The notes beneath the pieces are model-generated. The model did no database searches, was not told where the DNA came from, and was given only the letters and a program-made list of their open reading frames with translations. A DNA stretch of 33,657 nt from Trichosphaerium sp. ATCC 40318 (Eukaryota > Protista > Tubulinea). How positions within the stretch are numbered: the stretch's first letter is position 1; each line of letters opens with the position of its first letter. The stretch is from contig JALMLS010000152.1 of assembly GCA_038496445.1 (NCBI GenBank), forward strand, positions 1-33,657, written 5' to 3'. The position numbers and the translations under genes were made by a program. Positions 24,301 through 28,900 of the stretch are shown in pieces.

Positions 24301-25886
24301 GTTCTTGCTGACCTCATTCTTAAACAAACTGATATCAAAGTCAACCCAGATGCTCTTTTTGATGTCCAGATCAAGCGTATTCATGAATACAAGCGCCAGT
24401 TACTCAACATTCTGAGGTACCATCTCATAATGCGTTCCCTTTTTTGTAACATATCTTTAGTGTTATTGCTCAATACCTTGATATTTTGAGCGCATCTGAC
24501 CAAGCTAAATCAGAAATGGTCCCACGTGTTGTTATTTTTGGCGGTAAAGCAGCTCCTGGATACCATAATGCGAAGATGATTATTAAACTCATATGCAGTG
24601 TCGCAAATGTTGTTAACAACGACTACAAAGTGTCCAACCTCCTAAAGGTATTTTCAACAGACAAAATCTTCTTCTTAGTTGCTAACCTTTTTTTGAGGTT
24701 GTATTCCTGGCCAACTACAATGTATCTTTAGCTGAAGTTATCATTCCTGCTGCTGATATATCTCAACATATTTCTACTGCAGGATACGAAGCCTCAGGAA
24801 CAAGGTAAAGGATATGATGTAAAACCATCAAATTTGCTTATTTTTTTTCAGCAACATGAAATTCGCTTTGAATGCTGGTATTATTCTTGGTACTTGGGAT
24901 GGCGCTAACATCGAGATTGTTGAAGAAGTCGGTGAAGAAAATGTTTACATATTTGGAACCCGCAAAGATGGTGTTGCAGCCGCAAGAAGGTATAGACAGA
25001 GCATGCGAAAAAATTAAGAAAAACTTGGTAAAAAGATTTTTAACAACTTTGTAGTCATGGGCATAGACAAATTGATGTTCGTTTGTACAAGGTCTTAGAA
25101 ACAATCCAATCCGGTACTTTTGGTGACCCAGAACCATTCAAGTGTCTTACGGATAAGCTATGGACAGGCACGAACTATATTCTTTCAAAAAAAACGAGAT
25201 TAACCTTAACACGTGTTTTAATTTCTTTAATAGGAGATGATTACTACCTCCTTGCTGAGGATTTTACTAGTTACCTAGAATGCAAAAAGAAGGTTGACAA
25301 GAACTTCATGGGTACACTTTAATCCAACAAAAAAGTTATTTATTTTTCAAAACAAAGCTGACATTTGTTTCAACAAAATAGATAAAGACTTGTGGTCTCG
25401 TCAAATGATCTTAACAACAGCTGGGATGGGTAAATTCAGCAGTGATCGCACTATTAAGGAGTATGCAAGAGACATTTGGGGTGTCAAGGTACAAAGTTTT
25501 TTGCAATGAAAAAAAAACCAAGTCAAAAAATTTATTTTGAATAATGAATTGTGTCAAAATTATCGCACCAACAGTTTCGAAAAAACTACGTGCCTGCGCA
25601 TCCCAGACCAACCATAAGGCTCCATGGTGTAACGGTTATCATACGTGTTTTTGGTACATGTGACCCCGGTTCGACTCCGGGTGGAGCCTAATATCTTTTT
25701 ATGTGGTGTTATTTGACGCTGAAAAACAAGCGTTGGTGCTGAAGCGTTTTCAAAGTAATTTTCACTGAATATTCGTCCTAGCCTTGTGCCCTTCCTCTTG
25801 TTGAAGATGTCGAACTCAACGTTCCTAAGATGGGCAAGACACCAACCTCATTCACTCCAGACTCGGATTCCTCCTACGAGACATAA
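21337..25886 (+). CDS. Glycogen phosphorylase (GT35)
   Basis: [61 protein letters not shown]-lysine motif [21 protein letters not shown]. Many introns, including GC-AG at 23644 and 25168; last exon 25782-25886. Confidence 0.97.
25618..25689 (+). tRNA. tRNA-Gln(UUG), inside the last intron (25489-25781) of glycogen phosphorylase
   Basis: Cloverleaf: GGCTCCA/TGGAGCC acceptor, CGTGT-TTTTGGT-ACATG anticodon arm (TTG), CCCGG-TTCGACT-CCGGG T arm, T discriminator. Confidence 0.96.
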
Positions 25887-25990
25887 TTCCAAAATACCAA
25901 GAACGACAGACTAAAACAATTCGCAATAAATAAAATAGCAGTTAACAACTCTTTTGGCTCAAAAATTCTTGAATGTATTTTAATAACTGT

Positions 25991-28900
25991 TTACATCATG
26001 CCAGGAGGTATTTGTGGACCAGCTGGGCCACCAGGTGGACCGCCAGGACCGCCTTCAGCGTTCTTAGACGTAACACCTGAAACAATCATATCAACTCTTA
26101 GGAGCATGTTAGCGGCTTCAATTGCTGTCTTGATTGTCTGAGCCTTTACTTGGTATGGTTCCCAAACACCGTACTCCTTTTGATCTACGATAGTACCTAC
26201 ACATTTATGAGTAAACGTTTCAAGAATTTGTACCGCTACTCGCGCGACAAAATAGGCTAAAATGAAGTATACGTACCTTCAATACCATTAAGACCCCATG
26301 TAGCGTTATCACCAGAGGCGTGCTTGGCCTTCAAGGAGTTGATAACTTTAACGACGTTTTGACCGCAATTTGTTGCTAGAGTACGTGGAATAACTTCCAA
26401 AGCATCAGCAATTTGAGTGTAAGCCCATTGCTCAACACCAGGGATTTCTTTTGCTTTTTCTCTCAAACGGACAGATAGCTCCATTTCGCAAGCACCACCA
26501 CCTGGTACGAGTTTTGGCTCAAAGATAATGTTACGAGCAGTGAAGAGAGCATCCTACAGGAAAAAAGGTTAGATTGAAAAAACGGGGAGAGGACTTTCGT
26601 TGAATAAAAAATACTTTTGAGAAAGTTGTTTTGGTGGTTAACTACGCGCAGAGGCTTCTACGCAAAAACACCTGGAGCAATAAAAATAAAAAATACGTAC
26701 TTGCAAACCGCGCTCTACTTCAGATAACAAATCTTTCATAGCACCACGAAGCAAAATTGTACAAGCTCTAGGGTCTTTGCACTCGATAAAAGAATAGTAT
26801 TCATCACCCATTTTACGGACTTCAAAGAGCTCAGCTGTACCAACATCAGATTCTTTAAGTTCTGCAGGTCTGTGAACAATTGTAGCGCCAGTAGCTCTAT
26901 AGTAAAAAACAAGCGAGTAAGCCTCAAAGCACATAGAGAGAGAAGAAAACGAGATAAGTTTAATTCAAACAAAACAGTTTTTTTTATAACATCAGAAACT
27001 CCGATCATACTCAAAGAATTTCATAAGGCTCTGGAGATAGTTTCATCACGTGATGAGTGGAAATAATGAATTTTGCAACATTTCTAAGGGTTTTTTTTTC
27101 TTCGTTTTGCGAAAAAAATAATTGCTTGTGCGTACCTAGCAAGACGGTCGTTATCTGTCTTTTTCAAACGACGCAAAGCGGTTACGCCAGCTTTTTGGAA
27201 ATAGTGTTGAGCGAGATCAGAACAACCCTTCTCAGTGACTACAAGGTCTGGTTTCAACTTTAAGATGTTATCGCATAAGTTTTTGACATATTGTTCCTCT
27301 TGTTGCAATAATTCCATAAATGCATTCTCATCCATAATGTCAACTGTGGATTGGGATTCTCCCTTTTTGTATTCGAGAGTGCAATCGAGGAGAACTAAAC
27401 CACGTTAGACGGACATACATTAAAACCGCTTAAAACGGTCAAAAGAGAACGTACTGACTCTTGGGTTTTCAATGCGTCTTCGCATCTTAGCATGGGTTAC
27501 ATCCTTGTTCATAACGACGCCAGGAACTACTCTGCAGTCCTTGATTTCACCACCAGGTACCTAAAGGCAGGGTAAGGAGCAGCAAAAAAGCAAAAAGATA
27601 TTAGGCTCCACCCGGAGTCGAACCGGGGTCACATGTACCAAAAACACGTATGATAACCGTTACACCATGGAGCCTTCTTCTTATGAAAAGAAAGAAAATA
27701 GTGCGGTTTTAGTCAAAAAATATTTGTAGATCCCTTTTTTGCGAATGAAATAAATTTGTACCTTCATTGTGTAACAATAACGTTTCAAGTCAACCTCAAG
27801 ACGTCCGTCAATTTCTGTCTTTACGTAACCTACAGCCTGTGCTGCCAAACCACACATAAAGTCCTCGTAACGTGCGATGAATTTTGTACTAATGCATGTT
27901 TTGATAACCTAACGTAGCGTCAGAGAAATTGTTTTTGCGTAGCAACAGACAAAATACGATAATTGTGTTAAAATCAGAAAAATATCCAAGTATGCTCAAC
28001 GAATTTCACAAGGCTCTGGAGATGTATCTTCATGGTTTTCTCAAAAAATGCCAACTCGTTTTACCAATGACAAGTTTCTAAACTGTTTACGTACATCAAT
28101 CATGACTTCTTTTTTTGACGCGTCAACATCTTTTGACATGCCTTTTAGTATGTTGAGGGCATCTTCCAATGCTCTTTAAAATACTGTTAACAACTAGGAA
28201 AAAGAGCGAACAAAATTGCAATAAAACACGTCGAGCTTTGTTGAGATTAAATGGCTGTGAAGCGACTTTGAGAAAAAAAACTGTTTGACGCTTTAATTTT
28301 TTCAAAAATGATGTAAATCTTTTCGTACTTTGTGTATCCATCAATGATAACGTGAGGGTGTACTCGTTTATCAATAAGAGCTTCTGCTTTGGATAATACT
28401 TCACCAGCAAGAATTACAACAGATGTGGTACCGTCACCGACCTTTTTGAGTTATAAGTACATACATTCGAGAGTAAAAATAAGCTTTGTCTGAAAGACGT
28501 AAAAGTAAGCGTTTTGAAGAGGATCAGGCTGAAAACTCGAGTATTTTTGTGAACGAGCTTATTTTAAATCGTTCTGGCGCGTCTTGTTCTGTTATAGCGA
28601 TACAATAGAACCAGAACAATAAATTGAGCGTTTTCCTGATTCTCAGTGCGTGTACAAAAAAATACTAGTTTGCTTTTTTTTTTTTTGCTGCCAGTTTACG
28701 CTGTATGGGCGTTGTTGTAACACTAAAAATAAGGCGAAGCGTACGTTTTCGTCCTGTGATTTACTTAAATCAATGAGAGTCTTAGCAGCAGGGTGAGCTA
28801 CGCTGACCTCTCTCAATATGGCGTTTCCGTCGTTTGTAATTAACAACTGACCGCGGTCGCTCAAAATCATTTTCATCATTGATTTTGGGCCTAGAGATGA

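Follow-up and report, generated by a model that had tools for sequence, protein, structure and literature searches.

Transfer RNA (tRNA) genes nested within introns that belong to protein-coding genes are well known, the one animal in which they have been counted being Caenorhabditis elegans, where 44% of 609 tRNA genes are intronic, 56% of these lie in sense orientation and the host promoter influences expression (PMC4999229). Excision of tRNAs from introns was raised there as an unproven possibility, and a sense share of only 56% was taken by the authors as evidence against excision as a general route (Sagi et al. 2016; PMC4999229). For a tRNA cut out of an RNA polymerase II (Pol II) transcript, just one precedent has been well tested, the tRNA-Sec of Trypanosoma brucei, which lies in sense orientation within a Pol II unit and is processed out of it; its gene has neither consensus A and B boxes nor upstream RNA polymerase III (Pol III) elements, and it is silent outside its polycistron (Aeby et al. 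2010; PMC2943599). Presented here is an analysis of two identical tRNA-Gln(UUG) genes of the amoeba Trichosphaerium sp. ATCC 40318, located in a stretch of 33,657 nucleotides (nt) that is called ‘the window’ below (contig JALMLS010000152.1 of assembly GCA_038496445.1, positions 1 to 33,657). Each gene lies on the sense strand of an intron, and each carries a run of five T (T5) in its anticodon arm. Judged from the signals that surround them, from which we infer the polymerase, the two copies are probably ordinary autonomous Pol III genes nested in the introns of two convergent housekeeping genes.

As in C. elegans, complete tRNA genes with internal promoters sit in the introns of protein genes; the differences are that about 13 of 15 nested genes are in sense orientation in the sample from Trichosphaerium, against 56% in the nematode, and that the Gln genes contain an internal T5. 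As in T. brucei, the tRNA lies sense within a Pol II unit, but the Gln genes, unlike tRNA-Sec, keep all Pol III-type signals and have identical copies that appear to lie between genes. Intronic box C/D and H/ACA small nucleolar RNAs (snoRNAs) and mirtrons are likewise small RNAs lying sense in spliced introns; these are host-dependent and have no promoter and terminator of their own, whereas the tRNA-Gln genes carry their own signals. A sequence-only reading of the window had noticed the two genes and had proposed them as the best candidate for a new system, which is too strong a statement for an arrangement of which intron-nested examples are well established (PMC4999229).

Both genes are found by ARAGORN, which calls them Gln(ttg) with limits one base wider on each side, and by the Rfam model RF00005, which they match over its full length (model positions 1-71) at 56 bits, the gathering score being 29; the Rfam limits, which give U8 and the discriminator U73, correspond to the standard tRNA register. 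Copy 1 occupies 25618-25689 on the forward strand and copy 2 occupies 27603-27674 on the reverse strand, both being 72 nt long and 100% identical. The internal T5 is read directly from the sequence at 25648-25652 in copy 1 and at 27640-27644 in copy 2 (A5 on the forward strand), and it covers tRNA positions 31-35, namely U31 in the final base pair of the anticodon stem, U32, U33 and the first two letters of the anticodon. U33 and the anticodon UUG dictate three of these Ts; U31 and U32 are not so constrained. As the sequence-only reading had stated, the two copies have the same trailer, AATATCTTTTT, composed of AATATC followed by T5, so that the run in the anticodon arm is as long as the first T run downstream. 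The 5′ flanks differ, and the pair forms an inverted arrangement in which the trailer is the only flanking sequence in common.

The host introns were established with assembled contigs from four public RNA runs covering positions 24500-28800. Copy 1 is hosted by the last intron of a glycogen phosphorylase gene (25489-25781, forward strand, 293 nt, GTAC...TAG), as indicated by one spliced contig of one run (X9) with a joint at 25486>25780 (GT..AG, cut +2). Copy 2 is hosted by an intron of the CCT-gamma gene CCT3 (27561-27761, reverse strand, 201 nt, GTAC...TAG), for which spliced contigs with a joint at 27556>27758 (CT..AC, cut +4) come from runs X1, X2, X3 and X9, belonging to three studies. 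Host exons were searched one by one: TIGR02344 (CCT gamma) is the best match for each of the four CCT exons searched, with PF00118 matching as well, and the phosphorylase exons match PF00343 and TIGR02093, profiles that end in the exon stopping at 25488. A frame check over the eight confirmed CCT3 exons gave no stop in 459 codons. The identity of both hosts and the outer intron limits at 25489 and 27761 thus agree with what had been read from the sequence alone, as does the sense orientation of both tRNAs relative to their own, convergent, host genes. The last phosphorylase exon (25782-25883, forward strand, 34 codons, followed by a stop at 25884-25886) encodes an unconserved tail of 34 residues, and it is covered by spliced contigs spanning 25780-25904 and 25780-25941. 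The sequence-only reading had asked whether phosphorylase transcripts might end before 25618; since the spliced contigs reach 25904-25941, past the tRNA, these transcripts do traverse the tRNA-bearing intron.

Two minor features of the host genes can be mentioned here. The 5′ splice sites of the RNA-confirmed introns between 24648 and 28744 are GTAC in 10 of 11 cases and GTAT in the remaining one, the fourth base being unusually fixed. Only about 104 nt separate the stop codon of the phosphorylase gene from that of the convergent CCT3 gene (25886-25991), and with contigs extending to 25941 on the forward strand and from 25958 on the reverse strand, the 3′ ends of the two genes must nearly touch or overlap.

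The transcription signals of the Gln genes were evaluated against a sample of tRNA genes from the same genome. From 68 RF00005 matches, 40 stretches drawn from the best-scoring ones were taken and reduced to 41 independent loci by collapsing copies with alike flanks, and four tRNA-Lys-like loci belonging to a repeat family were set aside, leaving 37 loci for signal statistics. In all 37, a run of T4 or longer begins within 10 nt of the 3′ end of the tRNA, as compared with 10.7% when positions are drawn at random from this DNA (p about 1e-36). The first run is T4 at six loci, T5 at 22, T6 at six and T7-T9 at three, and the predominance of T5 (22 of 37) makes it the usual stop signal in the Trichosphaerium genome. 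A second T run is present behind every T4, and at 11 of the 37 loci no second run occurs within 80 nt. Against this background, the T5 that starts 7 nt after the 3′ end of copy 1 (25696-25700, forward strand) is a probable Pol III terminator, and copy 2 has a T5 at the same distance (27592-27596) with a T6 as a backup (27584-27589), these runs (27584-27596, reverse strand) lying within the pyrimidine-rich end of the host intron. The end of copy 2 is 42 nt before the 3′ splice site of its host.

Upstream of the tRNAs, an element with a fixed position emerges from the same 37 loci: T is found at positions -44 to -41 in 25-28 of the 37, as compared with about 33% elsewhere, and this T enrichment is followed by a G-rich segment from -39 to -33 and by a G-poor, A/C-rich segment from -11 to -1. 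We would regard it as a TFIIIB-type site. All Gln loci have a T run at this position. In copy 2, T6 at -46 to -41 is followed by GACTAAAACCGC (27703-27720, reverse strand), and in copy 1 a weak variant is found, with TTT at -43 to -41 followed by CGAAAAAAC (25574-25587, forward strand); a similar weak variant is present at locus L008 on contig C65. Within copy 1, the A box at about 25625-25635 (TGGTGTAACGG, forward strand) fits its consensus partially, and the B box at 25668-25678 (GGTTCGACTCC, forward strand) fits exactly the established consensus GGTTCGANTCC. Taken together, a positioned upstream element, an exact B box and a T5 at +7 constitute the anatomy of a self-contained Pol III gene.

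Among the sampled loci, the upstream motif common to most tRNA genes consists of T4-6 followed by GG- or CGG-rich bases, as in CTTTTTGGCCG (L020, L030, L034 and L038). In a second class of upstream sequences (L031, L040 and L041), TTTACA(A/G)A lies at about -45 and AATTTC at about -25.

The scope of the family was determined by a search of the whole assembly (70.3 Mb, 642 contigs). It contains eight identical copies of tRNA-Gln(UUG), all with T5 at positions 31-35 and forming the only UUG family found, and one copy of tRNA-Gln(CUG) with 88% identity to the UUG gene. Two of the UUG copies lie on contig C275 in the same arrangement as in the window, within introns that are 97-98% identical, and by this similarity the pair would be either the second haplotype or a very recent duplicate. 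One copy on contig C65 has near flanks like those of copy 2 and is followed, after about 45 nt, by a likely 3′ splice site. The three remaining copies (contigs C301, C292 and C205) have flanks in common and represent two distinct loci (L003/L004 and L007) with a TALE homeobox gene on one side and a MORN-repeat gene on the other; the MORN open reading frame (ORF) begins about 400 nt downstream, and the tRNA is co-oriented with this downstream gene. A T5-bearing Gln gene thus appears, from its surroundings, to exist also outside any recognisable intron. The trailers are kept across the Gln loci in the forms AATATC-T5 and AATATCC-T4...T5, the CUG gene having AATAATC-T5. In long ORFs, CAA accounts for 511 Gln codons and CAG for 171 (75% CAA), and from this codon demand together with eight UUG copies against one CUG copy it follows that tRNA-Gln(UUG) must be made in quantity. 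The idea that these genes are pseudogenes was rejected, given eight identical copies, no other UUG family found and CAA as the major codon.

A related possibility concerns the window copies alone, which might be inactive relics silenced by host transcription, with the intergenic copies supplying all of the tRNA. In C. elegans, intronic tRNA genes, and sense ones especially, have lower Pol III occupancy (PMC4999229), and the weak upstream element of copy 1 would be in line with silencing. But all eight copies are 100% identical and have intact trailers, and nesting of this kind is seen at about 13 of the 41 loci in the sample, so that nesting cannot generally mean silence; relics are accordingly a very improbable explanation. 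The distribution of differences between haplotypes argues in the same direction. In the phosphorylase intron, about eight of 10 differences fall between -18 and +40 relative to the tRNA and none within the tRNA itself, with one or two in the other approximately 160 nt. Such clustering of differences beside active tRNA genes is a mark of transcription-associated mutation, and the pattern may be read as a hint of local tRNA transcription. An alignment of window positions 25600-25727 with L005 places the clusters at -18 to -12 and at +1 to +38, with exons almost unchanged. The trailer of copy 1 keeps its T5 in the second haplotype while its spacer has two changes; with an identity of 97-98%, the haplotype copies are too close for a strong test of promoter or terminator conservation.

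How would tRNA-Gln(UUG) then be produced? In the proposed scheme, Pol III would transcribe each gene from its own signals, namely the T-rich element that precedes the mature 5′ end by about 44 nt, the A and B boxes and the oligo-T, and would terminate at the T5 located 7 nt past the 3′ end. Two alternatives had been offered in the sequence-only reading: either the tRNAs are cut from Pol II introns like snoRNAs, possibly with a coupling of tRNA excision to host splicing, or this Pol III reads through T5. The upstream element, the A and B boxes, the T5 at +7 and the copies outside recognisable introns favour the second. For the first, as for the coupling to splicing, no positive support was obtained in genes that display promoter and terminator signals of their own, and both are retained only as possible side routes.

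In its explicit form, the Pol II alternative supposes a dual or an exclusive Pol II source, in which RNase P and RNase Z free part or all of the tRNA-Gln from the host precursor messenger RNA (pre-mRNA) or from the excised intron. It has the attraction that the internal T5, being no stop for Pol II, would be bypassed, and that the sense bias would reflect selection for the route. Both copies do lie sense in RNA-confirmed introns, a Pol II-made tRNA is known in T. brucei and, in human cells, Pol III does stop at a T5 placed in the anticodon loop (PMC2943599); the ratio of about 13 sense to two antisense among the nested genes sampled, against 56% sense in C. elegans (PMC4999229), also fits. On the other hand, an RNA released purely by processing of an intron has no need of an upstream element at a fixed position or of an oligo-T, and the presence of these signals, including a consensus B box, therefore speaks for autonomy. 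The T5 terminator is moreover kept between haplotypes despite the changes in the spacer, identical copies appear to sit between genes, loci flanked by antisense coding segments have the same signals, and the downstream neighbour is antisense in 10 of 24 cases, so that the sense bias is no simple rule. This source is, on balance, unlikely, and autonomous transcription by Pol III is the preferred explanation.

The orientation data on which part of this argument depends were obtained as follows. Strands were called with a codon-usage score trained on long ORFs, which placed all seven known CCT3 exons tested on the right strand; an automatic finder of spanning introns, based on GTA[CT]...AG and codon scores, was discarded as it gave wrong, over-long introns at both known cases. 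With the nearest well-scoring coding segments taken as neighbours, 23 upstream neighbours of the sampled tRNA genes share the strand of the tRNA and five do not, and of the downstream neighbours 14 share it and 10 do not. A gene was considered firmly sense-nested when it splits a Pfam domain, or a known order of domains, encoded on its own strand or when the intron is confirmed by RNA. Besides the two tRNA-Gln(UUG) genes of the window, for which the introns are RNA-confirmed, firm cases are a tRNA-Asn in a 6-phosphogluconate dehydrogenase gene (NAD_binding_2 positions 86-129 before and 124-157 after the tRNA), a tRNA-Ile(AAU) in a peptidase M13 gene (domain positions 289-331 and 332-381), a tRNA-Ile(UAU) within Pyr_redox_2, the tRNA-Gln(CUG) between the HUS-domain and Sec7-domain exons of a BIG/Sec7-type gene, and two tRNA-Trp in an eIF4G-like gene. 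Probable cases are a tRNA-Pro in the same oxidoreductase gene as one of the tRNAs just listed, a tRNA-Asn in a CH-domain gene, a tRNA-Thr in a RecQ-like gene, a tRNA-Trp in an APH-like kinase gene and the tRNA-Gln copy on C65. The antisense candidates are L038/L039 (Arg-UCU) and L040 (Met), which have antisense coding segments on both sides; L038 and L040 have the same upstream element and terminator as the other loci. The resulting count of about 13 sense to two antisense, from a small sample in which several calls rest on codon statistics, has a binomial probability of about 0.007 against an expectation of 50% and of about 0.013 against 56%. Intronic tRNAs are thus not randomly oriented in this sample, a point on which the sequence-only reading had wanted a check, and the sense bias, within so small a sample, is real. 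Literature searches for amoebal tRNA genes that lie in introns with a preferred orientation returned nothing relevant.

Several causes of this bias can be envisaged. Possibly, head-on encounters of polymerases are avoided inside active host genes, or anti-tRNA sequences are avoided in abundant pre-mRNAs. It is also possible that the U runs of the tRNA gene are useful as part of the pyrimidine tract of the host, as the T5 and T6 of copy 2 are found there, or that host transcripts truly contribute to the tRNA supply.

Autonomous transcription entails a specific difficulty, as the T5 is present in every UUG copy and 75% of the Gln codons are CAA: whichever polymerase makes tRNA-Gln(UUG) must pass the internal run. 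Among the 20 distinct tRNA sequences sampled, T5 occurs only in Gln, with T4 in Lys(UUU) and Arg(UCU), all of these runs lying in the anticodon arm. The nearest parallel is the internal T4 of human tRNA-Lys(UUU), where the run likewise arises in the loop from U33 and a U-rich anticodon, and where Pol III is slowed, not ended, by T runs in lysine anticodon loops; pausing at terminators is enhanced by structured nascent RNA (bioRxiv 10.1101/2025.10.17.683076). Unlike this T4, and unlike those of the Lys(UUU) and Arg(UCU) genes of Trichosphaerium itself, the run of Gln is one base longer and equals the modal terminator. In budding yeast, terminators of 7U-8U are the commonest and runs of up to 6U are leaky in vivo (PMC4937561); the usual stop here, T5, is shorter.

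What distinguishes the internal T5 from the real terminators is the predicted fold of the RNA that precedes it. For the neighbouring bases, a comparison of the internal T5 with real T5 terminators revealed no distinguishing difference. For the predicted folding of the preceding 35 nt, the mean is -8.6 kcal/mol before real terminators, with -4.7 as the weakest value, as compared with -2.4 before the internal T5, where a U-U mismatch and a G-U pair in the D stem account for the weak fold. At real terminators, the T run begins 1-9 nt behind the folded T arm and acceptor end, whereas the internal T5 is preceded by the weak D arm only. Passage of Pol III through the internal T5 would then be explained most readily by a context dependence of T5 termination, the mechanism of read-through that we infer as the likeliest; some premature stops at the internal run could occur and would be offset by the high copy number.

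If such stops prevailed, the outcome would be attenuation: Pol III would mostly stop at the internal T5 and release abortive RNAs of about 40 nt, a minority of rounds would give tRNA and eight copies would cover the shortfall, with the T5 as a tolerated defect or a built-in throttle. T5 is indeed the commonest first terminator, 11 of the 37 loci lack a backup run within 80 nt, the internal run is followed by GG as are some terminators, and the excess of UUG copies (eight, against one CUG copy) would suit a need for compensation. The much weaker predicted RNA structure before the internal T5 than before real terminators argues against it. A strongly throttled supply also seems costly when CAA is 75% of the Gln codons, and a single U32C change would break the run, yet all eight copies keep it. 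Attenuation as the dominant regime is slightly less probable still than a Pol II source, and autonomous genes with read-through of the internal T5 are preferred.

A number of points nevertheless weigh against this preference. A T5 put into the anticodon loop of a human tRNA stops Pol III completely, to the extent that such an insertion has served as an assay to distinguish Pol III from Pol II transcription (PMC2943599). The GG that follows the internal T5 provides the local context of some real terminators, and together with the stop seen in human cells it means that efficient read-through is not trivial. The upstream element of copy 1 is a weak version only, and the copies regarded as intergenic could sit in unannotated introns of the 5′ untranslated region of the MORN gene. 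The assembled contigs reveal neither where RNAs start and end nor any small RNAs, and the tRNAs themselves are covered by none of them. Finally, simple autonomy leaves the sense bias of about 13 to two unexplained.

In a broader idea, Pol III-type small-RNA genes would be systematically sense-nested in this organism, with host Pol II transcription functionally coupled to them, either by licensing Pol III or by opening another, T5-proof route, namely excision of the tRNA from the pre-mRNA or from the intron after splicing. Of such a route tRNA-Gln(UUG), with its T5 and its task of supplying the major Gln codon, would be the clearest client. This proposal is unlikely.

The bare finding of tRNA genes nested in introns is ordinary, and the interest of the locus lies elsewhere. 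The internal run of the only tRNA-Gln(UUG) family found has exactly the length of the commonest stop signal, which makes it a natural test case for context-dependent termination, whether the context is RNA structure or position. In addition, a sense share far above that of C. elegans raises questions about Pol II-Pol III interplay, with the options of collision avoidance, antisense-RNA avoidance or a real second production route from introns.

Other observations were made on the tRNA genes of this assembly. The family set aside from the signal statistics is a dispersed tRNA-Lys(UUU)-like family (L014:2564-2635, L023:2553-2626 and L024-L028, all on contigs other than that of the window), in which more than 200 nt of downstream sequence are free of T4 or longer runs and the T element at -44 is missing. 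Conservation extends over about 60 nt on the upstream side and about 130 nt on the downstream side, AATAAA-like motifs included, and the family may be a repeat element or a unit without Pol III termination. Inverted pairs of identical tRNAs, 0.3-2.3 kb apart and with near-identical flanks, are found for Lys-UUU (L011:2499-3122), Asn (L015:2486-4905) and Lys-CUU (L049:4040-4455). Pairs of tRNA matches on the same strand, about 12 nt apart, occur on C291 (19757-19907), C318 (12187-12337) and C369 (2296-2446) and may represent dimeric tRNA genes. In most eukaryotes, tRNA-Tyr genes carry an intron; intronless tRNA-Tyr(GUA)/tRNA-Ile(UAU) genes are found here at L042:2520-2592, L043:2543-2615, L044:2553-2625 and L020:2568-2641.

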